From: Octopus sinensis
Taxonomy: Eukaryota
Direction: 5' to 3'
DNA: 64,000 nt
Assembly (NCBI RefSeq): GCF_006345805.1
Contig: NC_043001.1
Coordinates: 32,488,001 to 32,552,000 of the forward strand
A program made the position numbers and the translations under genes. Below are positions 6,920 to 54,531 of the stretch, in pieces (the first letter of the stretch is position 1; every line of letters begins with the position of its first letter). The notes beneath the pieces were generated by a model, which was given only the letters and a program-made list of their open reading frames with translations, made no database searches and was not told where the DNA came from.

Positions 6920-7778
6920 ATATATATATATATAGTATATATACATATATCTATATAACATATATAGATATACATATAATATATATACCTATACATATAT
7001 ATATAAATAACCATATACATATATATATATACATATAACATATACATATAATATATATTACATACACATATATATATACATATACACATAATATAATACA
7101 TAATACATATACACATATATATATATACATATATATATATGCATATATTATATGCATATATATATACATATACATATATATATGCATATATATATACATA
7201 TAATATAACTATACATATATATATGCATATATATATATACATATATATATACATATATATATATCTGCATATATAATATACATATACATATACATATACA
7301 TATATATATGCATATATATATACATTACATATATATATGCATATATATATAACATATACATATATATATATGCATATATATTACATATACATATATATAT
7401 ATATATGCATATATAATACATATATATATATTCATATATATATATACCTATGTATATATACCTATATATATATATATACATTATATATATATGCATATAT
7501 ATATACATATGTATTATACATATATCTATATTATATACATACACATATATAATATACCTATATATAATCCTATACATATATATATATGCATATATATATA
7601 CATATGTATATATACATATATATATCTGCATATATAAGATTAACATATGTATATATACATATATTATATATACATATATATATATATATGTATATATATT
7701 ATATATATATATATAGTATATAATATATACATATATATATATATATACAGATATATATATATATACATATATATATTA

Positions 7779-7838
<60 letters not shown>

Positions 7839-7930
7839 TATACATATATCTATATATACATAGATATCTAACATATCTATATATATACATATATATATAG
7901 ATATATACATATTATATCCACTATATAATG

Positions 7931-7976
<46 letters not shown>

Positions 7977-8005
7977 TCTAATATATATATACATATATAT
8001 ATAGA

Positions 8006-8071
<66 letters not shown>

Positions 8072-8121
8072 GTACATACATATATCATATACAATATATA
8101 TACGTACATACATACATACAG

Positions 8122-8178
<57 letters not shown>

Positions 8179-8260
8179 TGTATGTATGTACGTAGGTATG
8201 TATGTATGTATGTATGTACGTAGGTATGTCTATGTGTGTCTGTGAGTATGTATACGTTTG
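6920..8260. repeat. Degenerate (TA)n/(CATA)n microsatellite tract
   Basis: About 1.3 kb of interrupted TA repeats; it produces the poly-IY ORFs in the ORF track. Confidence 0.95.
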
Positions 8261-9924: not shown

Positions 9925-10140
9925 TGCTTTCAAATTTTGGCACAAGGCCTGGAAGCTTAGGAGAAGGGGTAAGAGATTTACATCGACCCCAGTCATCAAC
10001 TGTTACCTATTTTATCGACCCCGAAAGAATGAAAGGCAAAGTCGATTTCGGAAGCATTTGAACTCGGAACGTAAAGAAGGGCGAAATACAGTTAAGTATT
10101 TTGCTCGGCGTGCTAACAATTCTGCCGGCTCACCACCTTA
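9925..10140 (-). mobile_element. tRNA-derived SINE, family 2 (central GCCTTTCATCCTTTCGGGGTCGATAAAATAAGTACCAG domain)
   Basis: The minus strand gives a head GGTGAGCCGGCAGAATTGTTAGCACGCCG and B-box-like GAGTTCAAAT. The central domain resembles the Meta-type SINE core (recalled, not searched). Confidence 0.75.
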
Positions 10141-10339
10141 AATGATAGGCAAATATTAGTACTAATAACAGGAGGGTAAGGAAGAGTAGCAGGTCAAAGT
10201 AGCATTTAGAATGTCCACAGAAACCGAAGCAGTGGCGAGCAGTGGGGTCAAATGCAATCTATTGTCAAAAACTGAGATAGATGAAGATACACACACGCAC
10301 ACGCACACACACGCACACACACATATATATATATAGTCA

Positions 10340-17830: not shown

Positions 17831-19404
17831 ACACAGCCACTTCTGCGCTATATATATGAATTCATCCCTAAAATGACAACCTAGAAATATGCCTAGATTT
17901 TTCTATCGTAGTTGATGAAAAATTCAAAATTATATTATACAACGACTAAATGTTTTTCTCACCGCAAAACTATTTCGATTTAGTTCATTATACTCCGGCA
18001 TTAAACATGATAACGCTAACCTAACTAATCAAAGCACAGCTAATACATTTTATACACCAACCCATAAGAGCTAGCAAGAAATAATTATCTAATGAGAAAA
18101 AGTCAATATTAATCAAAAACTAAAATGATTTTAATGTATTTTAGCTAAGTGGCAAGTACCAGAATCATAAGCAAGTCGGGCAAAATGCTAAATGGCATTT
18201 CCTCCATCTTTATTGCCTAGGCTCAAATTCAATCGAGGTCGACTTTGCCTTTCATCGTTTCGGCGTTGGTAATATAAGTACCAGCGGAGCATTTGGGTCG
18301 ATGGAATCGACCTAACTGCCCCACCCCACCAACGAAATTTCTGCCCCTGTGCCAGAATTTGAAACCTATATAGTTTGGCTAAGTACTGGCGACAAGTCCG
18401 TATATGGTTTCATCTTATCGTAGTTTCATCCGCGAACCTTATCCAAGACCATTACTAATTAAATACAGTAGACCCTCGCATTATGAGTGCATCGTTGTAT
18501 GGATAATTTACTGTACGAACCGAGACTCGTGCGAATTTTTGTCTTGGAGTACGAGCGGAAACCTGCAGTACGAGCACACAAATCGTCCCACCATTAAGGT
18601 ATTTCAGTTAATAAAACCAGTTTACATATTTCTTTTGCATTCTCTTTTTTACAATTGTCATTTCACTTGTAACTACACCATATCTGTTTTAAACTCCATA
18701 AAAAATTATTTTCGTGTGGTTAAGTAAACTGACGATATAGAAAACTACATTGATTTGAAAAATTCTGAAAAAACAAAAAACAACAGAAATAAGGCTTACG
18801 CAGCAGAGTTTATTGGAAAACGTAGGCAAATACATAAGGTTTTATTTAAAATATCAGAACACTTCCACGTGGGTTCCACTGCATACACGCAGCACATCTA
18901 GACATCAAAACGATAAACTGTGAAAGTTGAAAAGATAATTTATGGAACCCCTGTGATGAATACAAACAGAATTAAAATACTCTGTAGGTATAATTGAGAT
19001 GAGAAAAAAAAATTATTCAATTACTATAATTCTTTTCATATTTTTTCATCGACTCTTAGAGTTTCCTTCGGCTACGTTTCGGTTGTTTTTAGTCCTCGTT
19101 AGTAAAGTATAACCTTCATAGTATTTACCAAAAGTGATGACGATGGAATCTCTAAGTAAATGCACAGAATTGTACATTAACTGACCTATGAAAACACTAG
19201 GAAATTGATGATAGTGTGTGTCGGTAAAACTGAAGCAGAGAATTTTGTGAATTCAAGTAATTTTAAAGGGATATGAAACTAGAATATAAGAATATATCCA
19301 AAATTTCAAATTTGCTTGTAATAAAATTTAGTTATTTACAAAGTAAATATTCTAGACCTACGTGAAACTCTGAACTTATGCAAATATCAAATGAAAAGTT
19401 GTTA

Positions 19405-20529: not shown

Positions 20530-20961
20530 ATGGATCGCGCGGCAGCCTCCTGGCGACCGCCGCTAGTCTGCCGGTATTGGTCGCGGCTACGTCCACGTTG
20601 ATATGGGCGAGACCGCGAGCTTTCGTTCATTTACGACTGGCGGTTGCCTTTCGCTGGCGGCCACGGCGCATAGACGAGTAGGGAACAGACGTCGGCGTGA
20701 AGGCGGGGGCCACCGGCTATTTATTGACCGACTACTTGCTACTCCGTCAGGCAGAGAGTCAGAGTTACTCCCGCCGATTGACCGCGCGGAATTTCTTATT
20801 CATTGGCGTTGGTGCACTCGTGCTCGATATCGCTGCTGACGACTGAGAACTCGTCGGCCGTCGACCGCCTCATCAATAACACACGGACACACACACTCGT
20901 ACTCTCGATCGCTCCCAACGACCGAGTCTCACTTAGTCTCGCCGTTTGTCCGCGCTTCTTC
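20530..20961 (-). pseudogene. GC-rich mosaic of diverged nuclear 28S rRNA segments (helix 69 region, twice)
   Basis: The minus strand has CGGCGGGAGTAACTCTGACTCTC (20754-20776), 22/23 identical to canonical 28S CGGCGGGAGTAACTATGACTCTC. A second, more diverged AAGCGCGGACAAACGGCGAGACTAAGTGAGACTC lies at 20924-20957. Confidence 0.7.
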
Positions 20962-21840
20962 TGCACGTCTTCTAATTAATAAAACAGAGAGTTAAATTTT
21001 CGTCAAACCATTCATTCTAGCCCCGATTTATAAAGCAAATTATTATGCTACCTTAGTACAGTTATAATACCGCAGCTGTTAAATATTAATCACCGAGCAG
21101 GCCCAACTCTTTATTAAAAAAACTCAGACATGTTTTTGATAAACAGGCGAAATTTACTTTGGCCAAATTCTTTTATTTTACTTAATTAATAACATGTATA
21201 TTTATATCATAAACTTTAAATTTAAACATACTTAAAATAGATAAAACTATTAAATATATACTACACAATAATATTCATTTTAACATTATATTTATTTCAC
21301 TTTAAATAATTCAAAGAAATTTATCTAATAATTATAAAGAAATTTCAACAACATAAAAATATATTAAAAATAACAATAAAGAAAAAATATTAATTTAACT
21401 TTAATCAATCATTTTAACATCCAACTATATTCTTACAAACATGCGTGAAGCTTATCCCCCAATACTTATTGATCCCTATTGATCGTTTTTTCTCTCCCTT
21501 TTGATCGAAAACCTACCCCACGTTTTTTTCCTTTTTCTCCCCAAAAAGAAAATCTCTACTTTATAACCTGTCCCGTCTGTGTGCAGCTCTGTGTGGCTAA
21601 TAAAGAAACATAATTAAGTAAATAAATCTTATTTCGAGAAAACCAAATATATTAAATAATATTATCAAACCATTATGCAAAAGGTACAAAATTTAAATTT
21701 TACTATACTTAAACTATATAATCTTTCTCCTTCTTAGTACAAATAAATAAACTATTTCTATACCCATTACTTTAAAACCAAATTTTTTTATTTATATTAA
21801 TATCATCTCAACTACCTTAAACAATTAAAAATTTAATCTA
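20962..21840 (-). pseudogene. rrnL: NUMT: mitochondrial 16S rRNA, 5' part to domain IV
   Basis: Exact 16Sar primer site (CGCCTGTTTATCAAAAACAT, 21130-21149) and AAGGTAGCATAAT...GAATGAATGGTTTGACG (21001-21054). Interrupted by a LINE tail at about 21445-21612. Confidence 0.9.
21445..21612 (+). mobile_element. Family C LINE 3'-end fragment inserted in the NUMT
   Basis: GATCCCTATTGATCG...TGTCCCGTCTGTGTGCAGCTCTGTGTGGCTAATAAAGAAACATA, homologous to 4740-4890. Confidence 0.8.
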
Positions 21841-21844
21841 AATC

Positions 21845-21905
21845 AAAAATAATTTATACGTAAGTGAGACATAATTGTGTTAATTTTTGTCTATATTCTA
21901 AAATT
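21845..21905 (-). pseudogene. trnV: Probable mitochondrial trnV remnant between rrnS and rrnL
   Basis: Lies between the two rRNAs; the minus strand AGAATATAG...TCTCACTTAC has a TAC anticodon-like loop, but the 3' half is decayed. Confidence 0.4.
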
Positions 21906-22353
21906 ATTCCAGAAACAATTTCCATTACTTCTACTATGTTACGACTTATCTTATTTAAACAACAAGAGTGACAGGCGATATGTACACTTTACAAAACCAT
22001 ATTCAACTACACATACTAATCATCAAGTTTACTATTAAGTCCACCTTACTTACAAAATTTAATTTTCATTATCCAGATACATAAATAATATAAATTATTG
22101 TAGTCCATTAAACCTTCTTTATTAGCTACGTTATGACGACATATCAACCATAAAGTTTTAAAACTGATGTAATACTTACAGTGTTTAATAAAATGAAGTA
22201 GCATGAAACGATTGTACTACGCTACCTTGGATATCGTTGTTGCTTATTTTGATTATAATCACCTCATTTGATTTATATGGATAATATCATACAAAATTCT
22301 GGTGCCTTTAACTTAAGTACCATATTCATCTGAATATAAATTTTGCTGAACTT

Positions 22354-22406
<53 letters not shown>

Positions 22407-23030
22407 ACATTATTGGTGAATTGAAGAAATGGAGCTGAACGCAGATTGAACAGAAATCGTTTTATTTCATTCTACACGTGTTTCGAAACTTTTGATTAAT
22501 CTACTACAAGATTATTCATCTTTCTATTTCACATAATATATATATATATATATATGATTTAAAAAAAGTAAGTTTAAAATGTGGATTATCAAATTATATT
22601 AACAAACTCCCTAACTGGATATGTAATACCGCCAAACCTTTAAAGTTTTAAACAACAATTAATAATTAATTATTTAATCATTTTCATAATACTTAGGTAA
22701 ACAAAAATCAATTTTTACACTAAAAAATAATAGGGTATTCCTTGTGTAGATAATAAAGAAAAACAAAAAAAAACCATATCAATTCTAATAATTTTGCCAA
22801 AAAACTAACCATAAAATTTTCTTTCAATCACAACTACATCTTACTTTACTTTTCACCCAAACCTTTTAACTTTAATTATAGGTATAACCACAGATGCTGG
22901 CACAAATTTATACAATTATAATTTCTATATAAAACTCATTCATTGTATAAATAAATATACTGAAATATTAATTTACATATAAAAAATTATTTAATACTAA
23001 ATTACCAATATTCTCTATGTGATATTTCTA
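21906..23030 (-). pseudogene. rrnS: NUMT: mitochondrial 12S rRNA, interrupted by microsatellite and Penelope-like inserts
   Basis: Contains CTACTATGTTACGACTTATC (about 21931), AAGAGTGACAGGCGATATGT (21964-21983, 17/20 to the 12Sbi primer), GTGGATTATC...AATACCGCCAAA (about 22582-22636) and reverse-complemented GTGCCAGCATCTGTGGTTATA (22883-22903). Confidence 0.85.
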
Positions 23031-23355
23031 TCAAAATTCCCTGTTATTTAGAGTGGGCGGTCCCACTTTGTTTTAGCCAGTACCCTGTCCTTAAAAAGAA
23101 TAGTGAAAATTTTAAAATGATAAAAAATTAACTAAAACAGTCCTAAGGCAGGGTTATTAGAAGTCTAGTCCGGTGTTATTTTTAATAAGGTTTTTATTAT
23201 CTTTATATGTCTCATCCCCACCGAAACAAGGCCTTAGAGCCTTGCTACCCCTCGCAGAAAATATATAAAAATAAAATTTAAAAAAAAATACTTCAGGGTC
23301 TCCAACAAACCAGCCTCTCAGTCTTAAAAAAAAAAAAAAAAAAAATCTGAAGACT

Positions 23356-24257
23356 TCACTGAAGGGGTATTATGTTGGAGTCGGAAGGAAAACTTGCTTT
23401 TATTTGTACAATTTTTGTTATATTATACCTAAGCTCAATGTACCCGGTGTTACTAACCTTATACTGAGGGCTAATCCTCAGCATATTATAGGTACAAATA
23501 AGAGCTGTTCGGCTAAGACGTCGTCGAAATGACTTATCTTTTATGCCCGAGGCGTCCAGTGCCTGACTCGCAGGTCGGCACCAGGCACCGATTGGGAGTC
23601 CATGCACCTCTACCGGCCGGTCGAACTCCTGCAAAAGCAATTGCTCGAGCGGTCGGTATTTGTGCACTTTCTCGAGGGCAGCCTCTTTCAAGGCGTCCCC
23701 CTGCTCCAATCTGACAGTCACGTCGACGACAACCACCTTTTCTGGAGGGCTAAAGACCAGGCCTGAAGCCGCTTATAATATAGGACGGCTCCACACTGAC
23801 ACTCCAACCATGGTCTACAGCTTCCTTCGCCACCAGGTCACATATTTTATTATGCCTGGCGAGTCGTGGCCCTTTAAGAGCACCACATACTCCGCTGACG
23901 TGAGAAAGTCTCTGCTCCTAACCTACATCTCGGACACGTGGAGTCCCCACGGAGACCACGTGTCAGAGTTTCACGGGTAGGAAATACGTTGGAGCGCATC
24001 TTGAGCAGACTCAAGAAGCACCCCTCCGTAATCCTACCCGGCCTACTTATCCAACTATTGCCTATTGCATCCCCACGGTACGCCACCGCACATGCCCCCT
24101 GCACCGGCTGGGCCGCCCATCTATGGGAGTGCACCAGCCGGATGTCAGGGTCGTATTCGGCCGCGCTCGCAGGTAGCAAAGGCAAATCGAAGGAAGCTAT
24201 AAGTTGCTGGTTCTGTTCGGCTAATCCTGCAGAATCAGCAACCTTTCTCAGAGACAT
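23356..24257 (-). pseudogene. R2 CCHC knuckle and restriction-enzyme-like endonuclease
   Basis: Contains NVFPTRETLTRG...CPRCRLGAET and VVVDVTVRLEQGDALKEAALEKVHKYRPL...VEVHGLPIGA. Confidence 0.85.
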
Positions 24258-24464
24258 ACTCTGACGTCAACAGGCGAAGGTTTCGGCGGACGACGGATTT
24301 TGGTATCAGTCTCACCATCTGGTGAAGACTTAACCCTCCGACCCGCCGGCTGCTATATAGGAAGGGAGGGGACGTAGAGTCGGGGAGATGTAGCATTTTT
24401 CTAGCCCCCACGCGGATGGCCGTGTCAAGCCTCTCAAGTATTCCTCTTGACGGCAGTACCTACA

Positions 24465-25595
24465 CTAACCATAAAAGAGTCTGGGCAGGTAGTATCGCTG
24501 GAGCAAGAGGAATTTCTGTCGGGGTTTCAGCGGAGCCCTGCACATTTTACTAATGTCCAGGGACACCTGCTCCACTGAATCTAAATCGAACTCCCGACTT
24601 GAGGTCGAAGTCCACGTGGGGATATTAACACCTAGATAAGATATTCTCTTCCCCGGTTCTACCTTTTTAATAGTGACACCATCGACACTCGGCGGGGTGT
24701 TCTCGTTGACAAGGTAGGACTTGCCCCAGCCGCGGATGGAGAACCACGCGCACTTATCGACATTAAGCCCTTGTCCAACCGTGCGATAAAACTCCAGGCA
24801 TCTGTCTATAAGAGCCTGGAGACCATCGCGCAATTTTGCAACTAGGGCCATGTTGTCAGCGTACGCGATTCCATCCATCCGGATCCCCATAACTTGCAAA
24901 TCCCCACTGCCGGATAACACATTTAGCAGCGGGTTTGTTGCAATGCTGAAGAGGATCGGCGAGAGCGCGTCCCCCTGTCTAACACCTCGACGAATCTCTA
25001 TGGGTTCACTAAGTTGCCCAACGACTGAGAATCTGTTAGTGCTACCTTCGTAGATCCTCTCCACGAGCGCTAAAACATGCTCGTGGAACCCAAGTCTCCG
25101 CAGTCCCGCATAGACCAATGAATGCGAGACTGTCGAAGGCCTTGGAGAGATCCAAGAAGGCAACCTCCAGCCGCGGTATTCTCAGTCGTGCTGGCTTCAC
25201 CATCGCGCGAATGACGAGCTGTCGCAGGAGAAATGAATTCTCACTGCAGCCGTCAGCGCAGATAAAGCCTCTTTGGCTTGGATTGAGGGGAGTTACCTGA
25301 AGCATGCGTTTGGCGACCATTTTCGAAATAAACGATATGCCGCAGAACATATCGTAATTGGTCGCCAAGTTGCAAAATCGTAGGGGTCGTCTGCCCTCTT
25401 TGATACGAGGACAGACCTACCCCGCTTCAGGATGTCGGGTACCTTACCCGCCAGCAACATGCAGTTGCATATATTTGCGAGGATAGCTGGGTCCATTGAT
25501 TTGATTTCACTAATTGTGAGACCAACTGGACCCGCCGCTGAGGAGATCATCTTGCGTCTACTAACTTTAACCTCCTCCACGGAGAACGGTCTCAA
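24465..25595 (-). pseudogene. R2 reverse transcriptase domain (three frames; catalytic YADD reads YADN)
   Basis: ORFs 25293-25595, 25042-25368 and 24465-25163 carry RT motifs 0-7. Confidence 0.9.
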
Positions 25596-25946
25596 AATAG
25601 GGCCGTTCTCAACCTGGGAGGAGGAAGGGTAGTTCGTAAGATCGACCTCAGGACCTGGAGCAGAAAACCTCCCTCTATAGAATTCCTCTATAGCATAGAG
25701 TGGGATTGGGCATTCCTGCTCCTTATCCTCGCCTAAAACAACTGCAAGGAGCCTCTTCCTATCTTTCTTGAATAAGTTCTGGTGGCGGGCGTATGCAAGT
25801 CACCTACCCCGCCGCCGAAAATTGGTATTATTTCTTGAAGTCCTAACTATCATTCCTGGTGGTCTCTTCCCTACGCGATCTGTAGTACTCCACCCAGTCC
25901 TCTACTCTTCTCTCAAAAGAGCCCCAGGCACCCGAGGTCCCGTTTT

Positions 25947-26495
25947 CTACGAGTTCCAATAGGGCCTCGGAGAAGACTGCATACCAACGGGTATGCCCAG
26001 GACATGCAGCATCGAGGAAGCGATCCTTCCAAAGTTAGACTGGGGTCCTCCCTCGATCTGTGGTTGGGAATCGGCAGCGGACCGCTCTGACCCTTGATGA
26101 CTCACAGGAGCCCTTTTGGTCAGAGCAGCCCTCTTGGATCCTACCTGCTTGGCAGTCTTGCCAAGTAGGAACCATGCGATGGCTGCATTTATATGCCTTA
26201 CTCCTGTCTTTACCAGCTCTGCCTCCTTCCCGACGAGGACCGCTACTTCCTCGTCAGACCAACAGCCTCTGCATTTTCGGCCAGATGCCTCGGCAGCGGC
26301 TGCCCGATCGGCACGCTTTTTCGCCACTTGCTCTAGACGAGCAGCAATCCTGCGGGCATTATCCACCGCAGGATGCTTGTGGCGAACGTGCTGCGATCGG
26401 CCTACAGCCGTCAAGAAAAGAACGGCTGCAGTGGTCGCATTAGAAGGAGAATAGAGCAGGACTAGGGGTAGGCGCTCTAGATGCACCACCATCAC
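25947..26495 (-). pseudogene. R2 ORF segment: third zinc-finger remnant and Myb-like domain
   Basis: Contains GRSQHVRHKHPAVDNARR and CWSDEEVAVLVGKEAELVKTGVRHINAAIAWFLLGKTAKQVGSKR. Confidence 0.75.
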
Positions 26496-27111
26496 ACAAG
26501 CCGGCGTGGCACCTCATCGAATGGAGGTGACCACTTTCCCTACCACACTTACTGCATCTGTAGACAGGCCTCGCGCCGTGTCTACTGTCTAAATGTTCTC
26601 CCCATCTAGGGGGAGAAGAGAAGCGTAGAGGACATAGCGGACAGGCTATGGAGCACGACGCGCAGGGAATAGTCAGCGAAAATTCGCTCCCAGCTGGAGT
26701 GAGGCTTGATACCCTCACTACCTCCTCTCGGTCCATTTCTAAATTAAGAGAATGGACGTCATGGGGGAGGTCCCTAGCGACCCCATCTCGGTCCGTCTCT
26801 AAAAAAAGAGAGTGGACGTCATCGACCGGGTCGTGTGCTAGGTCAAGCGGGAGCTGAAAGCCTTTTACCACCAAGGAATGGTTATTGTAGTCTAATCTAA
26901 AAATACCTACTTTATTCCGATTATACGTCAGTGTCGGGCGCAAAAGAGAACGCCCGACACTGGTCTTGTCATGTTCAAGCGAGCCACCAGATATTCCGTG
27001 CAGGGAAGATAGCTCATTGTCCCTTGCAAGGGAGGGTCGTAGTGCGGCCGAACACAACTGGGTAGTGCGTTCAGCCTGACCTGCGGGCCCCATCCCGGAC
27101 CCACAGGCCAC
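26440..27111 (-). pseudogene. R2 ORF N-terminus with two zinc fingers
   Basis: ORF track, 223 aa: CSIACPLCPLRFSSPPRWGEHLDSRH and YRCSKCGRESGHLHSMRCHAGLC. Confidence 0.75.
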
Positions 27112-27168
27112 CAGTTTGGCGGCGCCTGGTTACCGTTTGTTTTCTACCTTGTTATTTTCCATCATTCT

Positions 27169-27895
27169 GAGAGTCGGAATTACTCCCGCCGTTTGCCCGC
27201 GCTTATTCTTTCGCGTTGTGCGCCGACCGACTGGCAGCATTCGTGGACTTCGGATTGCTCCGTCGATTCCCAGTCGTCATGCGGCGACCGCGCTCCTTTA
27301 GGAAGACGTCTCATCGACGGAACGATGCAGTCACTCGCACCAGTCTTACGCATTTGGCTGCGCCGCGCACTCGCCTCTGTAAGGAAACGCGTAACGACGC
27401 ACGCACTCCTGCTCGATACCTCTGCTGAATATGACGACTAGCAACTCGGTTAGTCGCCCGCCGCCGCTGCCGCGTGCCTAACACACAGACACACGAACTC
27501 GCGCTCGATATCGCCGCGGAGGCGCTTCGGATTTCCACCAGAGTTCCCTCTGGCTTCGTCCCGACCGGGTGTGGATCACCATCTTTCGGGTCCCCGACCG
27601 CCTGCTACACCTGAGTCGGAGCGGGAAGGCAACGACGCGCACAAACAAGGTCGCGAACGCGCGGACTCGGCGCGGGAACGATGCTTCGAGGCGCCGCGCG
27701 CGAGCCCGAACGACGCGAGCGTCACTGTCGTCGCGAGCGATGACGTGTCACGTTCTCACTTTCGCTGTGCCGTCGGAGTTCGCGAAGTGAAAGGCTCCAA
27801 CGACTCGCAGTCGACTGGGACACCTGGGTCCGTGTCTCAAGATGGGTCGAGTAGGTTGCCGATGCACGCCGCTGACCGGCGGCAGCGGGCGGTTT
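27169..27895 (-). pseudogene. GC-rich, internally deleted and diverged 28S rRNA mosaic ending at the R2 target site
   Basis: Contains CGACCCATCTTGAGACACGGACCC (27826-27849, 21/24 to canonical 28S), GGGACCCGAAAGATGGTGA (about 27576-27594), GAAGCCAGAGGGAACTCTGGTGGA (about 27533-27557) and AAGCGCGGGCAAACGGCGGGAGTAATTCCGACTCTC (27169-27204, 32/36), in the correct order within about 0.7 kb. Confidence 0.8.
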
Positions 27896-27919: not shown

Positions 27920-29240
27920 TAGAGGGTGTCCACAAAGTCTGCGTATATGGGGATTAACATACTTTTAAAACAAACCAATTTTATTTAATTATAATGTTAA
28001 TAAATAATATTTTCAAAGTGATTTCCATCATTTTTCAATGCATAACTTAATGCGCCTTGCAAAATTCAGGTGAATTTGATTAAATAAGTCTACATTGCCA
28101 TCAATTTCAACACACTGACTGGTAATGCGTTCTCTCATGTGTTTTAAATCTGTAATCTTTATTGTAATCATTCTCTTTCAACATACCCCAGAAAAAGAAA
28201 TCAACAGGCGAAAGGTCTGGTGAACGAGGGGACCTTTCCATATGAGCCCTTCTTCCAATCCAGTGAGGAAAAGTGTCATTAAGCCAATCTAACTGTTGTA
28301 GCAAAATGGGTAGGGGCCCCATCCTGCTGAAACCAATTCAGAAGGCCCTCGCCTCGGCGCTCAATTTGAGATATTAATTTGTCTCTCAATATGTTTACAC
28401 AAGTCTCATCCGTTACATGTTCAATGAAGAAGGGTCCTAGAACATGAGCTTTCCACAAACCACACCACACCACCTTTTTGCTGCCTTGCTGTTTTGATGG
28501 ATCCATCCAATGTCGATTACCTAGAGACCAGTATAGAAGATTCTGTCTGTTGACCTCACCATTTACATAAAAGGTAGCTTTCTCACTGAACAACAAAGTT
28601 TTTCGTAAAATTGATATTTTCATCCAATTTATTTGAAAACCATTCGCACGTCTACATTCGTCTATTAGGGTCGTCTTCATTTAAGTGATGCAATATCTTT
28701 AGGTTGTATCGATGAAACTTTTCCTCACCAGCTTTTTGTGGATGGTTGGTTTTGGAACACCTAACACCGTGGATGTCCGACGAAGTGATTTCTTTGGGCT
28801 AGCAGAAACTTTAGCTATGACAGCTTCTTTCGATTCATCTGAAGTCTTTGGTCGCCCGGGATGGGCTTATCCAAAACACTGCCTGTTTCTTTAAATTTCT
28901 TGATCAATTTCCCGACGGCAGTAAAAAAAAAAAGTTTACCTATAAGGGTGTCGAAGATCAAATTCTTCCGCAATTTTGCGATAAGACCATCCCTCTCGTC
29001 CACCTAATAATACTAACTCGATTCTTTCTTCTTTAGACAGATCCATCATTCGATCTGGGATTCTTTCTTCTTTAGACAGAGCCATCATTCGATTATCTGT
29101 AGAAAAAATAACAAATAAATTTAGAAAAGTAAAGTATTTTTTTTTATTTAATTTCAACAAAAGTAAAAAAGAAACCTTATTATTTCTTATATTTGTTTAT
29201 GATTTTATTCCATGTACCCAGACTTCGTGGACAACCTAAA
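27920..29240 (-). mobile_element. Tc1/mariner-superfamily DNA transposon, decayed
   Basis: TIRs GGGTGTCCACAAAGTCTGCGTA (27924-27945) and TACCCAGACTTCGTGGACAACC (29215-29236). Transposase motifs SEKATFYVNGEVNRQN, WFQQDGAPTH and RSPDLSPVDFFFWG are split across frames. Confidence 0.88.
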
Positions 29241-30340: not shown

Positions 30341-30529
30341 ATATACACCGGCGAAAATAGTTAATACCGACGATAAAAGTTTTATTTCTTACAAAATATT
30401 TTGTTACTAACACCATACAAATTATTTATATCTTTTACACCTTATGCAAAATTTATTTCTCTTTCGAATGATGCAAACAATTTTTATACAACTTGAAGAA
30501 TTCTAATGCTAAATTAATATATATTTCTC

Positions 30530-30685
30530 AACTGCCCACAGGGGGCTAAACAGAGGGGACAAACAAGGACCGACAAACGGACTAAGTCGATTACATCGAC
30601 CCCAGTGCGTAACTGGTACTTAATTTATCGACCTCGAAAGGATGAAAGGCAAAGTCGACCTCGGCGGAATTTGGACTCAGAACTT
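30530..30685 (-). mobile_element. SINE family 2 3' half with Tx1-like tail
   Basis: Carries the central domain and the tail GTTTGTCCCCTCTGTTTAGCCCCCTGTGGGCAGT on the minus strand. Confidence 0.75.
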
Positions 30686-31200
30686 AATACAAACGTTTCA
30701 AATTTACCGGCAAAATTAAAGACCATGAAATATGTATGCAATTATTTTTCCCAAAATGGGTGGTCACACAACGAGCCTAAATGCACCATATAAAGTTATA
30801 ATTTAATGTTATTATACAATTTATTAATAATGGGAAAACAACGTAGCCTTAGTCCAGTCACGAGAGCAAAAATCGTATATTACAGCAAAAAGTTTCCTTT
30901 TCGAACATCAGCAAGCAACTGAAGTGCAGTAAACCGCCAGTGTGTATATTATATATATATATATATATATATAATGTATATAATACGAGAATTTTAATAG
31001 AGATAACCTGCAGTATATAGTACAACATTTTTGTCTCCGTATATGAGCTAAGTATTAATAAAATGTGGTATACGATAAAAATTTCGGATATTTGTCTTAA
31101 AACATTCAGACAAGAAAATTCAGATGTAGCACATGAGGTATTATTCCATACGAATATACACATACTTATATTAAGAGTTTCATGATAAAAATATTAAAAA

Positions 31201-32221: not shown

Positions 32222-35070
32222 TTATGTTGTATCTTTCACTCGCAACTTCCGTGCCACATCTTTCCATCGTTCTTCATACACTCTCCTAGTCAGGCATATT
32301 CTCTCCAGCCCTATCTTCCTTTTCAGGTGGAAGATGAAATAATTCATCAAACCAGGGCCAGAGATGAACTTGCCTGACTGTAAACCTTTCACTCTCGTCT
32401 TCAATATCACCTCTTTCGCAATTGCTACTACAACGAGAAAACGAAACTTACCTTCATTCACGAGGAAATCCGGTGGGTCAATTTTTGTAATCGACACAGT
32501 CGAAAGCTGTACTCTTCGTGTACCTGACAACAGCTGTTCGGCATAAACCCACACCTCAGACACGTCCGGACAATGAACAATAGCGTGCGGGACGGTTTCC
32601 CTATCCCGCCCGCCATCTTGGACATATCGGACTGTCTCGGCCACCGTGCCTTGCGAGTTATCCCGAACAGGTAGAGCTCCTCTGTAGCATTGCCATGCCA
32701 GAGACTTCTGGAAGTTGTCCAGTGTCCTCGGCTTGAACGTACGTCGGAACAGACTGGCCAGCTGATTATCGTCGAGACCTAGGGTTTCCCCCAAGGTATC
32801 TTCACATTCCGCCTCTACCAACCCTCTATAGAAGAATGTGGTGGAACCCCCACCGCAGGCGTTGCCCGAGCGACGGAATAGCAGGAGAGCCTTCCGACAC
32901 TGACTTTTCGCGACTGACTTTTCGCGATTAACTTTTGCTCCTGTCACCGTCTCGTAAACCTCTATGGCCTTGCCTACTTTACATAGGTGGTTCATTTCGG
33001 TTACGATGATGGTGATGTCATCCGCGTACGCTGACACTGATTTTCCATTACCCGGCTGTCGCGGGATGCCGCTCAGTTTTCGCAGTAATGGCTCTAGAGC
33101 CATCACGTACAAAAGCGGGGAGAGCGGACACCCTTGACGAACCGAGCGTTTGATTTTGAACGGCTTCGACAAGAAGCCGTTCACCCGAACTACCGAGTCG
33201 ATGTTATCATACATTTGGATAATCCACCTGAGGAAGCCAAGGCTCAGCCCGAACTGTGCCAGGGCAGATACCAGGTAACGATGGTCGACCCTATCAAAGG
33301 CTTTAGATTGGTCTAAATGGACCAGTACCCCACCCTTGCCAGAATCATTATTAAACCCCTCTATAGTGTACCGCATTAGATGGAGATTATCCTGAATGGA
33401 TCTGCCCGGAACGGCACATGTCTGTGCCTCTCCGATCAGACCATCCGCGACACGCGCCAATCTTTTCGATAACACTTTGGCCAAAATCTTCAACTCTGTG
33501 TTTAGCAGAGTGATGGGCCTGAAATTATCAATGCACTCCCCTTGCTCGGGTCCTTTCTGACGAGAGTCACTACTCCCCGGCGCACAGATCTGGGTATAAG
33601 CCCGTTCTGCTGCCAGTTCGCATAGACCTCCGCCAGTAGGTGCCCGAACAAGTCTGGCATACTCTTATATAACTCATAGGGTAGACCATCCAAACCCGGC
33701 GCCTTGCCTGCGCCGCAGTCCGCCATTGCCTCAAACACCTCCTCAGGCGTGATTGGCCCTTCACAGCCCTCCGCATCTCGCCCCGATAAGCGCGGCAGCC
33801 CGTCGAGTAGGTCCGTAAAGGCCCTCCTCCTATCCAGTCCGCCGCACTCACCGAAAAGCTGAGCGAAGTGCTCCTGAAAGGCCTCACACATCTCCTCGGG
33901 TTCATTTATCAACTCACCTTGTTGGTTCGTCAAAGATCGAATCGTGGCACCGTTACCATGCTGAGCTTCCACCTCTCGGGCCCATCTCACGGCGTTGATT
34001 CCTTCACATCCCATATGGCGGATTCTAGCCCTGACAATGCAGCCCATGTGTTTGGCCTCGAGGTGCTGGTTTAACACCAGTCTCTTGGACGCCACCTGAG
34101 CCGCAGAGCCAGTTTTCATGGCTTCCTCTAATTCCTTAACTAGAGTATTATCCCCTCTAGCCTCTCTAGCCACTACTCCTATGCTATATCTAATAGACTC
34201 AAACTTGATGGCTCGTTTGAGGGCATACCACCATTTGTTATTAATGATGGTACCGGATAGTGCCCTCTGAATTATGTTCCTAATCCGGTCTTTGTACTCC
34301 TTAATCGCCAATAGGGACGTATTAAGTTTCCAGTAACCGGATCCTCTATTTCTAACCTTATCTATGTCAAGCTTACAAGTGACCATTTTATGATCACTGT
34401 AGCTGATCGGGTAAAACTGTGGACACTTAGCTATTTTACTGTCTACTTTTCTAATTAGAATTCTATCTATATATGACCTGGAAGATCCGTCGCTGTTTGA
34501 CCATGTCCACAATGGAGCGTTCGGAAATTCCAGCCTATACGGATCTGCTAGCTCAAAGCGGCTTAGCAGTTCCATGAAGCCACTGTTACCTCTCCTATCT
34601 GGACACGAGCCAACACAATCTACATCCGCTTTGCAAATTGTGTTAAAGTCTCCTAGCACCACTAATGAATGCGAAGTACCAAGAAATTTTTCTAGATCAC
34701 GAAAATAATCACTTTGCCCTTTTTTACTGTTGGGTGCGTAAATTGCAACCAGTCTGATAACTTTACCATTACTGAACGTCAAATCCATGACGACCAGCCT
34801 ACCTTCTGGATCTGCAAAAATTAACTTTTTCTCAGAAACCCGGTTTCTTTTTAATAGGACCAACACCCCTCTCCCGCCTGTAGGACTGCCAGGAGAGAAA
34901 AAACTCTCGTAGCCGTCAAACAGCGGGAGAAGACCTCTTGGCCCCTCTAACCAGGTTTCTGTAGCAACAATAACATCTAATTACGCGACCTGATATCATG
35001 CAGGAAGCGACCTTGCTTCCAGCCTGCTCCCAGGCCGCGCACATTCAAACAACCAACATAAATGTAATCA
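32222..35070 (-). pseudogene. Family A copy 1 ORF2 (APE endonuclease, RT), frameshifted and deleted
   Basis: ORFs 33502-34866 and 32222-33493. Confidence 0.9.
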
Positions 35071-35384
35071 TTACTTACCTTATATCAGTGGTTCGGTTTT
35101 TTCGTTTTCTTCTTTTTGTGTCTTTTTTCTGGGCCTCGTGGGGGAGTCTGACGCAGGCCCTCGAATATATATGGAGATGTTATATCCATTCTGAGCGGGC
35201 CTACGTCATGAAAAAATTCGGACTTTATCCGTCCGTAATCCTTCCGGCCTATTCTGTACAATACATAGTCATTTTTCCTCCCAATTTTTTCTACTTTGGC
35301 CATCGCTGCCAACACATTACCGAGTCTATTGTTCGTGGCCTTAACGGCCATAAATGAGTTCAACGACTCTTTTTTTTTTTTGGT

Positions 35385-36398
35385 TTACTTTGGGAGGGGT
35401 GGTTTCAGTTTTTCTTTTTTTCTAGTGATTTTTGACCACCCCTCCTCCTTTTTCGTTTCCTCGCTCGTTTTTTCCTCCGCCGTTGGTTCCGCTGCCTCTG
35501 TCACCTCCACACCTTCAGCCGTCCCTCCTGGGCCGACCAGCGCTGTTTCTGATGACACCTCTTCTGCTTTTCCACTTGGCTGAGCTGCTTCCTGCGGTTT
35601 AGGTTGGGGTTGGCATTCTGCCCTTACATGCCCTTTCTTACCGCAGCCGAAGCACCTCGGCTTTCTGCCCTCTACGAAGACTGTGACTCTCTCATCTTCG
35701 CTTATCTTTAGAGTCTCTGGAATCTCCTCCAGGGTTTGTATTTCTGCCTGGATGGCTATTATTATCCGTTGCCCTTTCCAGAATTCTTCCTCCTCTACAG
35801 TGGCCTGGAGGATGTTTATTTTTTCCTCCAGGCCTACCATAACTGCTGCCACCAGAACTTCGGCATCCGCTTCTGGCGGAATATTATTCATTGTGATCTT
35901 GGATGTTCTTTTGCCTTTATACAGGGGTAGGAGAACAATATCCTCCGCTTTTATTGGTTCCATGGATAGCTTCTTCGCTACCTCCTCTGATGTGAATCTC
36001 ACCTCCACTGTGCCGTATTTCTTCCCTCGATTGATATATGTGATTTTATCCATTATCGGCTTTAAGCAATTTTCGATTTTTTTCTCCTCTATTTTTTGTA
36101 TTGATCTGCTTGTTGTATTGAAGGTCTTATAAATTATTCTTCTATTTGTAATTTCCTCCTGTTTTTGGGCGTTTGAAGCCACGGTTACTTCCGTGCCCTC
36201 TTTTGACACACAGTCCGCATGTTTTTTTAGGTTTTCCACATTAATTTTTTAAATTTTCTTGCCAGCTACTTCCGAAAATTTTTTCGCTGGTGCTGGAATC
36301 TTTTTTTTTTTTGGCGACCCCGCCTCTTTTTTCTTTGGCGACACCGCCGGTGATCCTGCATCACTTGTCACAGGTGAATACGAGATGGGTGATTCCAT
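35385..36398 (-). CDS. Family A ORF1 (gag-like, CCHC knuckle); ATG at 36398 with an in-frame TAA at 36249-36251
   Basis: MESPISYSP...SPKKK...FSEVAGKKI* (49 aa) continues in frame into the 284-aa ORF 35385-36239. Confidence 0.75.
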
Positions 36399-36620: not shown

Positions 36621-39600
36621 ATTTTATTACTACCCACAAGGGGCGAACATAGAGGGGACAATACAATCTGATGTGGGGTCAGACATACGGATGGTTCTTA
36701 CAAAAAATCGGATTTAAAAATAACATGAAATTACAAGAATATACACAAAATCGAATGATGAAACAGACCGGAAGACATTACAGGTGGAGTGGGTGCGGGT
36801 TTAGCTCGGACCCCACGAGCCCCGCCTCCCCACTGATACTTTTGGTTGCGCTTGGTATTACCATTTATGTTGTATCTTTCACTCGCAACTTCCGTGCCAC
36901 ATCTTTCCATCGTTCTTCATACACTCTCCTAGTCAGGCAAATTCTCTCCAGCTCTATCTTCCTTTTCAGGTGAAAGATGAAATAATTCATCAAACCAGGG
37001 CCAGAGATGAACTTGCCTCCCTGTAAACCTTTCACTCTCGTCTTCCATATCACCTCTTTCGCAATTGCTACTACAACGAGAAAACGAAACTTACCTTCAT
37101 TCACGAGGAAATCCGGTGGGTCAATTTTTGTAATCGACTCAGTCGACAGCTGTACTCTTCGTGTACCTGACAACAGCTGTTCGGCATAAACCCACACCTC
37201 AGACACGTCTGGACAATGAACAATAGCGTGCGGGACGGTTTCCCTATCCCGCCCGCATCTTGGACATATCGGACTGTCTCGGCCACCGTGCCTTGCGAGT
37301 TTATCCCGAACAGGTAGAGCTCCTCTGTAGCATTGCCATGCCAGAGACTTCTGGAAGTTGTCCAGTATCCTCGGCTTGAACGTACGTCGGAACAGACTGG
37401 CCAGCTGATTATCGTCGAGACCTAGGGTTTCCCCCAAGGTATCTTCACATTCCGCCTCTACCAACCCTCTATAGAAGAATGTGGTGGAACCCCCACCGCA
37501 GGCGTTGCCCGAGCGACGGAATAGCAGGAGAGCCTTGTGACACTCCGTGTACCAAGTACCGAGTTTCGATCTACGATTCGACCAGGTTTCCCGTCCACCG
37601 AAACTAGTGAACTTGGGAAACATCAGTTTTGCTAACGGAGACCACACCCGTTCACCATCCAAGTAGAGCCACAGATGTCTTAACCTCAGCGCATGTCTGC
37701 ACATCATCAGCCAAGGCATCCCTAGCCCACCCTTTAACGGTTGTTGACAGCAAGTAGAGCGTTTCACAAGTGGTTTCCTACCCTTCCACAAGAAGTAGAA
37801 GAGCTGTTTTTCCAACTTGGTCAACCACGAATCGGGGCAAGGAACGACGGAAAGGCGGTAGGTGATAACCGATGCGATAAACACATTGGCCACCTCCGCC
37901 CTCCCTTTCAAGGATAGCCACCGCCAAGACCAGGTCTTGGCTACTGCAGCCACCTTGCTCGTTACCTCGCCCCAATTCTTCTCTATTTGGAGGTCTGGAC
38001 CGAACCAGACCCCTAGCAATTTAATCGGACCCTCCGTCCAACGTCCCACGACGCTGTCAGGAGGCATAGACTTGCCTCTCCAGGTGCCGAGTTGCAAGCC
38101 GACTGACTTTTCGCGATTAACTTTTGCTCCTGTCACCGTCTCGTAAACCTCTATGGCCTTGCCTACTTTACATAGGTGGTCCATTTCGGTTACGATGATG
38201 GTGATGTCATCCGCGTACGCTGACACTGATTTTCCATTACCCGGCTGTCTCGGGATGCCGCTCAGTTTTCTTGCAGTAATGGCTCTAGAGCCATCACGTA
38301 CAAAAGCGGGGAGAGCGGACACCCTTGACGAACCGAGCGTTTGATTTTGAACGGCTTCGACAAGAAGCCGTTCACCCGAACTACCGAGTCGATGTTATCA
38401 TACATTTGGATAATCCACCTGAGGAAGCCAAGGCTCAGCCCGAACTGTGCCAGGGCAGATACCAGGTAACGATGGTCGACCCTATCAAAGGCTTTAGATT
38501 GGTCTAAATGGACCAGTACCCCACCCTTGCCAGAATCACTATTAAACCCCTCTATAGTGTACCGCATTAGATGGAGATTATCCTGAATGGATCTGCCCGG
38601 AACGGCACATGTTTGTGCCTCTCCGATCAGACCATCCGCGACACGCGCCAATCTTTTCGATAACACTTTGGCCAAAATCTTCAACTCTGTGTTTAGCAGA
38701 GTGATGGGCCTGAAATTATCAATGCACTCCCCCTTGCTCGGGTCCTTTCTGACGAGAGTCACTACTCCCCGGCGCACAGATCTGGGTATAAGCCCGTTCT
38801 GCTGCCAGTTCGCATAGACCTCCGCCAGTAGGTGCCCGAACAAGTCTGGCATACTCTTATATAACTCATAGGGTAGACCATCCAAACCCGGCGCCTTGCC
38901 TGCGCGCAGTCCGCCATTGCCTCAAACACCTCCTCAGGCGTGATTGGCCCTTCACAGCCCTCCGCATCTCGCCCCGATAAGCGCGGCAGCCCGTCGAGTA
39001 GGTCCGTAAAGGCCCTCCTCCTATCCAGTCCGCCGCACTCACCGAAAAGCTGAGCGAAGTGCTCCTGAAAGGCCTCACACATCTCCTCGGGTTCATTTAT
39101 CAACTCACCTTGTTGGTTCGTCAAAGATCGAATCGTGGCACCGTTACCATGCTGAGCTTCCACCTCTCGGGCCCATCTCACGGCGTTGATTCCTTCACAT
39201 CCCATATGGCGGATTCTAGCCCTGACAATGCAGCCCATGTGTTTGGCCTCGAGGTGCTGGTTTAACACCAGTCTCTTGGACGCCACCTGAGCCGCAGAGC
39301 CAGTTTTCATGGCTTCCTCTAATTCCTTAACTAGAGTATTATCCCCTCTAGCCTCTCTAGCCACTACTCCTATGCTATATCTAATAGACTCAAACTTGAT
39401 GGCTCGTTTGAGGGCATACCACCATTTGTTATTAATGATGGTACCGGATAGTGCCCTCTGAATTATGTTCCTAATCCGGTCTTTGTACTCCTTAATCGCC
39501 AATAGGGACGTATTAAGTTTCCAGTAACCGGATCCTCTATTTCTAACCTTATCTATGTCAAGCTTACAAGTGACCATTTTATGATCACTGTAGCTGATCG

Positions 39601-41811
39601 GGTAAAACTGTGGACACTTAGCTATTTTACTGTCTACTTTTCTAATTAGAATTCTATCTATATATGACCTGGAAGATCCGTCGCTGTTTGACCATGTCCA
39701 CAATGGAGTGTTCGGAAATTCCAGCCTATACGGATCTGCTAGCTCAAAGCGGCTTAGCAGTTCCATGAAGCCACTGTTACCTCTCCTATCTGGACACGAG
39801 CCAACACAATCTACATCCGCTTTGCAAATTGTGTTAAAGTCTCCTAGCACCACTAATGAATGCGAAGTACCAAGAAATTTTCTAGATCACGAAAATAATC
39901 ACTTTGCCCTTTTTTACTGTTGGGTGCGTAAATTGCAACCAGTCTGATAACTTTACCATTACTGAACGTCAAATCCATGACGACCAGCCTACCTTCTGGA
40001 TCTGCAAAAATAACTTTTTCTCAGAAACCGGTTTCTTTTTAATAGGACCAACACCCCTCTCCCGCCTGTAGGACTGCCAGGAGAGAAAAACTCTCGTAGC
40101 GTCGTCAACAGCGGGAGAGACCTCTTGGCCCCTCTAACCAGGTTTCTGTAGCAACAATAACATCTAACGCGACCTGATATCATGCAGGAAGCGCCCTGCT
40201 TCCAGCCTGCTCCCAGGCCGCGCACATTCAAACAACCAACATAAATGTAATCTATTACATACCTTATATCAGTGGTTCGGTTTTTTCGTTTTCTTCTTTT
40301 TTTGTCTCTTTTTCTGGGCCTCGTGGGGGAGTCTGACGCAGGCCCTCGAATATATATGGAGATGTTATATCCATTCTGAGCGGGCCTACGCCATGAAAAA
40401 ATTCGGACTTTATCCGTCCGTAATCCTTCCGGCCTATTCTGTACAATACATAGTCATTTTTCCTCCCAATTTTTTCTACTTTGGCCATCGCTGCCAACAC
40501 ATTACCGAGTCTATTGTTCGTGGCCTTAACGGCCATAAATTAGTTCGACGACTCTCTTTTTTTTTTTTGGTTTACTTTGGGAGGGGTGGTTTCAGTTTTT
40601 CTTTTTTTTTTCTAGTGATTTTTGACCACCCCTCCTCCTTTTTCGTTTCCTCGCTCTTTTTTTCCTCCGCCGTTGGTTCCGCTGCCTCTGTCACCTCCAC
40701 ACCTTCAGCCGTCCCTCCTGGGCCGACCAGCGCTGTTTCTGATGACACCTCTTCTGCTTTTCCACTTGGCTGAGCTGCTTCCTGCGGTTTGGGTTGGGGT
40801 TGGCATTCTGCCCTTACATGCCCTTTCTTACCGCAGCCGAAGCACCTCGGCTTTCTGCCCTCTACGAAGACTGTGACTCTCTCATCTTCGCTTATCTTTA
40901 GGGTCTCTGGAATCTCCTCCAGGGTTTTATTTCTGCCTGGATGGCTATTATTATCCGTTGCCCTTTCCAGAATTCTTCCTCCTCTACAGTGGCCTGGAGG
41001 ATGTTTATTTTTCCTCCAGGCCTACCATAACTGCTGCCACCAGAACTTCGGCATCCGCTTCTGGCGGAATATTATTCATTGTGATCTTGGATGTTCTTTT
41101 GCCTTTATACAGGGGTAGGAGAACAATATCCTCCGCTTTTATTGGTTCCATGGATAGCTTCTTCGCTACCTCCTCTGATGTGAATCTCACCTCCACTGTG
41201 CCGTATTTCTTCCCTCGATTGATATATGTGATTTTATCCATTATCGGCTTTAAGCAATTTTCGATTTTTTTTCCTCTTTATTTTTTGTATTGATCTGCTT
41301 GTTGTATTGAAGGTCTTATAAATTATTCTTCTATTTGTAATTTCCTCCTGTTTTTGGGCGTTTGAAGCCACGGTTACTTCCGTGCCCTCTTTTGACACAC
41401 AGTCCGCATGTTTTTTTAGGTTTTCCACATTAAGTTTTTAAATTTTCTTGCCAGCTACTTCCGAAAATTTTTTCGCTGGTGCTGGAATATCTTTTTTCTT
41501 TGGCGACCCCGCCTCTTTTTTCTTTGGCGACACCGCCGGTGATCCTGCATCACTTGTCACAGGTGAATACGAGATGGGTGATTCCATCTCCGATAACTGG
41601 CTTTAACAAGCCCTTGGCACAACCAAGATAATGATAGTTTTTCCCCCACGGAGGGGGGAACACCAACACGAAGCCCTCGCACGAAGGCCGACTTCAATAG
41701 TTGTACAACAATACAGAAAGACAGCTAGACACACAGTAGATCACCACGGAGAAAATATACACAAGGCAAAAATATAATAACTCACTATACACTATGACGA
41801 GTATTCAGTTG
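36621..41811 (-). mobile_element. Tx1/L1-type LINE, family A copy 2 (full length, about 5.2 kb)
   Basis: Nearly identical to copy 1 but retains the GLQLGTWRGK...WYTECHK segment. Most frameshifts fall in homopolymer runs. Confidence 0.92.
36865..40255 (-). pseudogene. Family A copy 2 ORF2 (APE, RT, C-terminal CCHC), split by 1-bp indels
   Basis: ORFs 39989-40231, 38762-39853, 38262-38885 and 36865-38322; C-terminal CPRCGRDRETVPHAIVHC. Confidence 0.9.
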
Positions 41812-52166: not shown

Positions 52167-52235
<69 letters not shown>

Positions 52236-52236
52236 C

Positions 52237-52277
<41 letters not shown>

Positions 52278-54443: not shown

Positions 54444-54516
<73 letters not shown>

Positions 54517-54531
54517 TTATATATATATATA

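Follow-up and report, generated by a model that had tools for sequence, protein, structure and literature searches.

Can an R2 retrotransposon carry a shortened copy of its own target gene? The question is raised by a 64,000-nt stretch of the Octopus sinensis genome (contig NC_043001.1, positions 32,488,001 to 32,552,000; below, the window), where an R2 element on the minus strand is preceded by a short, GC-rich sequence that resembles 28S ribosomal RNA (rRNA) and is followed by mitochondrial 12S sequence. A first-pass annotation, made from the sequence alone, offered two explanations: an R2 lineage with a shrunken 28S-derived leader, or an orphan 28S pseudogene in which the R2 5' junction was preserved. 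We favour the latter, at a probability of roughly three in four: the 28S-like sequence and the R2 together are a decayed, rearranged orphon of ribosomal DNA (rDNA), situated outside the ribosomal array, that keeps the R2 5' junction and has a nuclear copy of mitochondrial DNA (NUMT) beside it.

A degenerate and truncated R2 copy

The R2 copy occupies positions 23018 to 27168 (minus strand). Three-frame translation reveals, in order, the parts that make up the single open reading frame of an R2 (N-terminal zinc fingers and Myb, reverse transcriptase, CCHC and endonuclease): two fingers of the CCHH/CCHC type and a third that is degenerate, then a Myb-like segment, the reverse transcriptase (RT), a CCHC motif and a restriction-like endonuclease. 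The domains from Myb to endonuclease had been recognized correctly from the start; of the three zinc fingers reported along with them two are readable, but the third is degenerate here, its cysteines being lost in this copy and kept in the Octopus vulgaris copies described below. The coding parts alternate between frames over at least nine open reading frame (ORF) pieces, with no fewer than eight frame changes (confirmed by tblastn with a distant intact relative); the longest ORF piece measures 238 codons, and an intact ORF, as would be expected of an active copy, was not found in the element.

Pfam recognizes the RVT_1 domain at E = 1e-12. In a phmmer comparison with PDB the best match is the avian/turtle A-clade R2 (E = 6e-125 to 6e-124), followed by the silkworm D-clade R2Bm (5e-73) and, at a large distance, LINE-1 ORF2 (1e-12). 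The alignment to the A-clade R2 structure 9nl2 covers the region from ZF3 to Myb, the RT and the C-terminal part of the endonuclease. This order of matches shows that the element is a genuine R2 of the three-zinc-finger lineage (lineage A), although a dead one; the expected grouping of the RT with R2 is borne out.

Both ends were placed by alignment to relatives. The copy starts about 1.15 kb inside the 5' untranslated region (UTR) of its relatives and is therefore 5'-truncated, so that the earlier description as full-length does not hold for the UTR, nor for the broken ORF. Its 3' end had been set at 23035 but is located near 23018, directly followed by TAG (23015 to 23017, minus strand), a remnant of the downstream 28S (TAGCC...); all related copies likewise end in ...A followed by TAG. 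The R2 insertion site in 28S, TTAAGG/TAGCC (the slash marks the junction, here and below), can be recognized on both sides: the 5' side ends at 28S position -7 (GACTCTC), counted from the insertion site, and the 3' side keeps TAG, with the last six 28S bases (TTAAGG) missing at the 5' junction. The copy, truncated at its 5' end and fused to 28S position -7, represents an ordinary class of R2 junction, since 5'-truncated copies with small deletions of the upstream 28S are the usual finding (PMC2718515). Rfam at permissive thresholds reported no ribozyme or other RNA family at this junction or at the full-length 5' end of the O. vulgaris copies, though R2 ribozymes may fall outside the Rfam families; the window copy lacks the 5' end where a hepatitis delta virus-like ribozyme would lie.

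The upstream sequence is an eroded piece of 28S

The sequence on the 5' side (stub A, 27169 to 27895, minus strand) is what erosion has left of the upstream half of a 28S gene with an R2 inserted; it is 727 nt long and GC-rich. It extends from the end of D2 to helix 69, with about 1.1 kb missing internally, and terminates in the motif GGCGGGAGTAATTCCGACTCTC (27190 to 27169, minus strand). A nhmmer search with a 37-sequence eukaryotic 28S profile recovers 27859 to 27523 (E = 4.6e-25) and 27207 to 27169 (E = 3e-8), in agreement with the earlier observation of a 28S-like 5' neighbour that ends at 27169. The blocks are colinear with real 28S, where they correspond to -1738 to -1470 and -45 to -6 relative to the R2 site. 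The two secure blocks are about 1.43 to 1.45 kb apart in real 28S and only some 320 nt apart here (27522 to 27243). The first-pass description of condensed 28S blocks was therefore right about their order, but it overestimated their normal spacing (about 1.45 kb, not 2 kb), and the roughly 320 nt between them are only weakly 28S-like.

Preservation differs largely along the stub. The best-preserved part (27523 to 27862, minus strand), which holds the D2/D3 boundary and the GACCCGAAAGATGGTGA...GAAGCCAGAGG block, is 82 to 86% identical to reference 28S at -1738 to -1470, with an exact match of GACCCGAAAGATGGTGA at 27592 to 27576. The next part, segment X (27403 to 27514, minus strand; motif GTGTGTCTGTGTGTTAGG...GGTATCGAGCAGGAGTGC), is a strongly diverged 28S core with a GT-rich GTGTGTCTGTGTGTTA insertion; the Rfam alignment crosses it up to model position 954, and a three-way alignment with real 28S places it as well. 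Segment Y (27243 to 27402, minus strand) is GC-rich with weak colinear 28S traces, such as ..GGAGCAATCCGAAGTC resembling GGGGAATCCGACTGTC. Against reference 28S this region (27445 to 27243) does not score above shuffles, and in a comparison with the genuine upstream flank from O. vulgaris its score is reached by 7 of 300 shuffles, so the colinear blocks that are seen by eye have weak support. The stub closes with a piece of helix 68/69 (27169 to 27242, minus strand) that ends in GACTCTC and is 88 to 89% identical to 28S over -41 to -6.

An alignment to an Rfam large-subunit model had been proposed as a check. The model LSU_rRNA_eukarya aligns to stub A at positions 675 to 954 (28.6 to 34 bits) and 2193 to 2274 (13.7 bits, the helix 68/69 piece), with about 16 base pairs broken. 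Over the span that yields 28.6 to 34 bits here, a real 28S reaches 326 bits. Given the score of 34 against 326 bits, the broken pairs and the 1.1 kb that is missing, stub A is no functional 28S; a full-length, colinear and structure-preserving large-subunit match is not present in it. We conclude that it is an eroded piece of rDNA and not a maintained RNA. Its composition (GC 0.63, CpG observed/expected ratio 1.49) equals that of the 28S-derived sequence at the O. vulgaris locus, and CpG loss is small across the window (ratio 0.90). No rRNA in the window reaches the Rfam gathering threshold. The 64 kb contain no 5' 28S, 5.8S or 18S and no rDNA-like sequence beyond stub A and the second stub described below; the element is located outside an intact rDNA unit.

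Relatives in Octopus vulgaris lack the leader

Among database proteins the best and only close match is an O. vulgaris 'hypothetical protein', which turned out to be a chimeric gene model of 811 amino acids (P0001) drawn over 26 kb of chromosome OX597831.1. We examined 46.5 kb of this locus (L001; 79.80 to 79.85 Mb) and found at least six copies of the window R2 family, with 80 to 82% nucleotide identity to the window copy and 90 to 99% to one another. All are degenerate (longest ORF 665 codons). A second reference is R2-1_OVu, an R2 of O. vulgaris listed in Genome Biol 2026 (PMC13188248, Suppl. file 16), to which the N-terminal region of the window R2 shows 47% amino-acid identity (E = 9e-73).

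The L001 copies and R2-1_OVu have ordinary 28S junctions, with GACTCTCTT directly before the element and TAGCCAAATGCC directly after it. At the 5' ends in L001 the sequence reads ...GGCGGGAGTAACTTCGACTCTCTT/GTGGGGCC, or in fuller form ...GCGCGGGTAAACGGCGGGAGTAACTTCGACTCTCTT/GTGGGGCCTGTTTC..., after which about 1.2 kb of 5' UTR follows. The 3' ends read ...ACA/TAGCCAAATGCCTCGTCATC; two of them, ...ACA/TAGCCAAATGCCTCGTCATCTAATTAGTGACG, continue into a nearly normal 28S 3' half, and two related copies continue past A/TAG as CCAAATGCCTCGTCATC. Neither R2-1_OVu nor any L001 copy with a 5' end has the 28S-like leader, and no condensed 28S of the kind seen in the window occurs in the 46.5 kb. Because the junctions of the L001 copies are complete and canonical, the family uses the TTAAGG/TAGCC site and is without a 28S-like leader. 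In addition, the L001 5' UTR is related to that of R2-1_OVu (z = 5), which marks the long 5' UTR as an ancestral trait. These observations do not support an R2 lineage with a shrunken 28S leader: at least six L001 copies and R2-1_OVu combine ordinary junctions and a long 5' UTR with the lack of a leader, and the only other leader-like copy in the window and L001 (20985 to 20754 of the window) is without an R2. The orphan 28S pseudogene, the other option of the first-pass annotation, is supported by what is found, namely an eroded, colinear 28S and a truncated R2 joined to it at -7.

The O. vulgaris locus (L001 18540 to 44392) is a scrambled array of rDNA and R2 relics with a higher-order period of 12.8 kb. 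Here some 600 nt from the 3' end of 18S, together with internal transcribed spacer 1 (ITS1), are fused to the middle of an R2 ORF, and this ORF fragment is fused in turn to an 80-nt 28S stub that ends at the R2 site. Next come two R2 copies, head to tail, with only TAG-TTTC-CTCTCTT (about 14 nt of 28S) between them, and then a near-normal 28S 3' half, after which the whole arrangement repeats. As L001 itself is such a relic, it provides a precedent for interpreting the window in the same way. GC-biased conversion within relic arrays was considered for the A/T-to-G/C differences between L001 28S and generic eukaryotic 28S, and was rejected since the published 28S flanks of O. vulgaris and Sepia show the same bases.

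A second stub without an R2

At 6.2 kb from stub A the window contains a related 28S-like fragment (stub B, 20754 to 20985, minus strand), which the first-pass annotation overlooked. This paralogue of stub A consists of a decayed helix-69 copy that lost its stem without compensation (20972 to 20924), a segment X' (20912 to 20814) and a helix 68/69 piece that ends, as in stub A, in GACTCTC (20811 to 20754), all on the minus strand. The R2-site motif occurs twice in the window, in stubs A and B, and nowhere else. Segment X' is about 80% identical to segment X (z = 11.7 against dinucleotide shuffles), and the two have the GT-rich insertion in common, which real 28S is without. Such shared derived changes, absent from real 28S, show that stubs A and B descend from one already-decayed 28S fragment and not from two captures of live 28S.

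Stub B is not followed by an R2, and the sequence there has no match to R2 5' UTRs. The presence of a leader-like sequence without an R2 argues against the leader being a part of the element. The adjoining 220 nt or so (20530 to 20753, minus strand) are GC- and CpG-rich. We considered whether stub B might be an 'empty site' that runs past the R2 site into downstream 28S: in a semi-global fit to 28S +1 to +115, 24 of 500 mononucleotide shuffles score as high (p about 0.05), and z is -0.1 when the stretch is fitted locally to genuine downstream 28S from O. vulgaris; the stretch was therefore left unassigned. The comparison with ITS1 gives z = 2.

The helix-69 stem GGGAGT/ACTCTC, retained in stub A as first annotated, is unchanged in three stubs: A (27190 to 27169), B (20775 to 20754) and the O. 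vulgaris stub (L001 20938 to 20959). The 7-nt loops are changed in each (AATTCCG, AACTCTG and AACTTCG, respectively, against AACTATG in real 28S) and may share a variant ancestor such as AACTCCG, from which they would differ by single C-to-T changes. Furthermore, the best-kept stretch of stub A (-41 to -6) overlaps the region that lineage-A R2 proteins bind on 28S (-40 to -15; PMC11204384), although this preservation could simply reflect the need of R2 for an intact site at the time of insertion.

It might be argued from these patterns that the stubs belong to a propagated, functional mini-28S: a repeat family that keeps the R2 upstream half-site and the helix-69 hairpin, either as a landing pad outside the rDNA or as an element-borne leader that provides homology for the 5' junction. 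In a variant of this idea, the mini-28S would be mobilised along with 5'-truncated R2 transcripts that lack a ribozyme, as a leader that cannot be cleaved off. The two paralogous copies with common derived features would fit, as would the coincidence of the best-kept stretch with the A-clade footprint, the combination of intact stems and varying loops in all three stubs and the rDNA-like composition that is kept (GC 0.63, CpG ratio 1.5). Nonetheless, no such sequence accompanies the L001 R2 copies with a 5' end or R2-1_OVu, L001 has no copy in 46.5 kb, copy B is without an R2, and copy A is attached to a dead, truncated R2. On the Rfam model the condensed 28S reaches a tenth of the score of real 28S and has many pairs broken, and the extra helix-69 copy in stub B lost its stem without compensation. 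Together this makes a functional or propagated mini-28S very unlikely.

The mitochondrial piece

On the 3' side of the R2 the window holds a NUMT (20986 to 23014, minus strand), AT-rich and in sense orientation, that runs from inside 12S to the middle of 16S and is interrupted by a (TA)27 array and other inserted sequence. The mitochondrial 12S that had been proposed as 3' neighbour is hence confirmed and extends into 16S. Three landmarks are located on the same strand: the 12S '515' site (22903 to 22885, 2 mismatches), the 12S 3' motif (21983 to 21965, 3 mismatches) and the 16Sar primer site (21149 to 21130, exact), with the mitochondrial order and spacing kept. ARAGORN finds no tRNA-Val in this piece and Rfam at permissive thresholds does not recognize its mitochondrial rRNA. 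The mutation of universally conserved positions, the (TA)27 array and the extra inserted sequence show that 20986 to 23014 is an old NUMT and not mis-joined live mitochondrial DNA.

The same evidence bears on an assembly artefact, in which rDNA, R2 and mitochondrial reads would have been joined erroneously. All three are high-copy sequences that are prone to mis-joining, and the window has two gaps. These runs of N (1451 to 1550 and 59070 to 59169) are the only ones, however, and none falls within 20 to 29 kb. Every piece is strongly diverged from its functional counterpart, unlike live high-copy sequences, and the array and the extra sequence within the mitochondrial piece do not fit such a join. 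An artefact is hardly credible on these grounds.

Stub A, the R2, the mitochondrial 12S-16S piece and stub B all have the same sense orientation, which might point to an RNA-mediated origin. An untrimmed 28S-R2 co-transcript would then have been reverse-transcribed, with its 28S leader, into a site outside the rDNA, where template jumping between 28S-like, mitochondrial rRNA and R2 RNA created the mosaic and the skips within the 28S; the transcript would have escaped trimming since the truncated UTR no longer includes the part in which R2 ribozymes are normally found. Such a chimera would account for the R2 3' end, which bears only a 3-nt 28S tag before foreign sequence starts (as is also the case for the tandem L001 copies), and for the L001 R2 that is fused, with an 80-nt 28S stub, inside another R2 ORF. 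Published work is compatible with it: R2 proteins jump between templates in vitro (PMC11204384), about 28 nt of upstream rRNA are usually kept on R2 RNAs (PMC13580325) and R1 copies outside rDNA have 28S tags of 7 to 28 bp (PMC2718515). The 727 nt of stub A, however, far exceed any known 28S tag. Moreover, both ends of the mitochondrial piece are internal to rRNAs and the piece spans 12S to 16S, which fits a DNA-derived NUMT. The derived changes in stubs A and B are absent from real 28S, so that the template would need to be an already decayed 28S instead of rRNA, and neither a target-site duplication nor a split host sequence was found. We consider this origin unlikely.

How the locus may have formed

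The decayed orphon can be explained by a series of events. A cephalopod R2 of the three-zinc-finger lineage (lineage A) would have integrated at the usual site in a 28S copy through target-primed reverse transcription, as a 5'-truncated insertion with the loss of a few 28S bases at its 5' junction. The R2-bearing 28S piece, which is now outside any rDNA unit, then presumably decayed as a whole: substitutions accumulated, about 1.1 kb of 28S was deleted and the R2 ORF acquired its frameshifts. Local duplication of the fragment may have given rise to the second stub 6.2 kb away, and a piece of mitochondrial DNA and several transposons would have inserted around it. The '28S mimic' would accordingly be the eroded R2 target, not a part of the element and without a function. 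These steps start from what can be read directly at the locus (the identity of the pieces, their junctions, the truncation, the decay, the lack of a leader in relatives and the paralogy of stubs A and B); the order of events, and the occurrence of the rearrangements at the level of DNA, we infer.

Several observations weigh against this explanation. All six helix-69 changes fall in the 7-nt loop and the stem is untouched in three stubs, for which a post hoc calculation gives (21/57)^6 = 0.0025 on the assumption of independent changes. The order within stub B (helix 69, X, helix 69) is not colinear, which simple decay does not account for. The decay of stub A is uneven, as some universal core blocks keep 85 to 89% identity while neighbouring core is unrecognizable. 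The NUMT begins exactly after the R2 3' end and TAG, which needs a coincidence or a deletion. Finally, the count of copies of the A and B type covers the 64-kb window and L001.

Other repeats in the neighbourhood

Stub A is bounded on its 5' side by a mariner-like element that is complete and has inverted terminal repeats (TAGAGGGTGTCCACAAAGTCTGCG / TAGGTTGTCCACGAAGTCTGGG; 27920 to 29237, minus strand). The element lies nested within another copy of mariner-like type (29238 to about 30500, plus strand), and the transposase ORFs of both are broken. The other half of the outer copy, which was sought as a sign of block insertion, was not found.

Two adjacent degenerate copies of a long interspersed nuclear element (LINE) with an apurinic-type endonuclease and an RT (Exo_endo_phos, RVT_1 and zf-RVT) are located at 32222 to 34866 and 36865 to 39853 (minus strand). 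They are 77% identical to L001 16254 to 18197, just upstream of the rDNA relic there. A repeat resembling a short interspersed nuclear element (SINE), with units of about 100 to 175 nt that are 80 to 89% identical, is scattered over the window (9978 to 10143, 18160 to 18314, 30516 to 30690, 55932 to 56086, 56714 to 56816, 57069 to 57309 and 60494 to 60595) and is also found in L001 near 6700 to 6860; two or three tandem units directly follow the second stub region (20530 to 20158).

(TA)n arrays reach up to about 650 units (6917 to 8187; also 623 to 933, 52112 to 52451 and 54411 to 54572), and the long arrays explain a stretch of 11% GC at 7 to 8 kb. A tRNA-Thr(CGT) gene or tRNA-derived repeat is present at 2651 to 2726 (minus strand; 35 bits with Rfam, found by ARAGORN too). 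The regions 35001 to 36000, 40001 to 41000 and 42001 to 45000 have an AT skew down to -0.59 and a negative GC skew, their plus strand being rich in T and C.

Comparison with known systems

R2-1_OVu and the window R2 are alike in their host group, in the N-terminal three zinc fingers plus Myb and in the 28S target, which continues as TAGCCAAATGCC. They differ in that the window copy represents a diverged subfamily that is degenerate in both the window and L001, and is itself 5'-truncated, frameshifted and placed outside an rDNA unit.

A 'dead element replicating' was reportedly described by Martoni et al. in 2015 for the stick insect Bacillus rossius. For Drosophila, incomplete R2 copies outside 28S genes and tandem R1/R2 arrays outside rDNA are known (Stage & Eickbush 2009, PMC2718515). 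The relics in these insects resemble the window in the incomplete R2 outside rDNA, the small deletions of upstream 28S and the presence of dead copies multiplied by turnover at the DNA level. In contrast to them, the window has an internally deleted 28S stub of 727 nt attached, a second stub and a NUMT beside it, and a cephalopod host.

Non-28S insertions of R1 of the melanogaster type carry 7 to 28 bp of upstream 28S at their 5' end (PMC2718515), and so share with stub A the occurrence of 28S sequence at the 5' end of an rDNA-specific element outside rDNA. Those tags comprise tens of bases and derive from the transcript, whereas stub A measures 727 nt and has its decay in common with an R2-free paralogue. 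In a lineage of actinopterygian R2 the 3' UTR contains sequence derived from 28S rRNA (Kojima et al. 2016, PMC5035012); this is a genuine case of an R2 that carries such sequence as a part of the element. There, however, the segment is on the 3' side, is present in all copies of the lineage and goes together with a shifted insertion site, while the octopus leader is on the 5' side and absent from related copies. From rDNA orphons, rRNA pseudogenes and NUMTs in general, which are stranded fragments that decay neutrally in ordinary chromatin, the window shows no essential difference.

The octopus relics add no new mechanism. Were the stubs to form a propagated family after all, this would bear on the formation of R2 5' junctions and on the survival of R2 outside rDNA. 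Overall, a 28S-like sequence before an R2 outside the rDNA should first be read as an eroded target. Octopus genomes hold old relics of rDNA and R2, among them tandem R2 copies about 14 nt of 28S apart, 28S stubs of 80 to 727 nt and fusions of rRNA-gene fragments with R2 ORFs. These relics could be of use in dating the R2 subfamilies of cephalopods and in showing how the array gets rid of rDNA units laden with R2.

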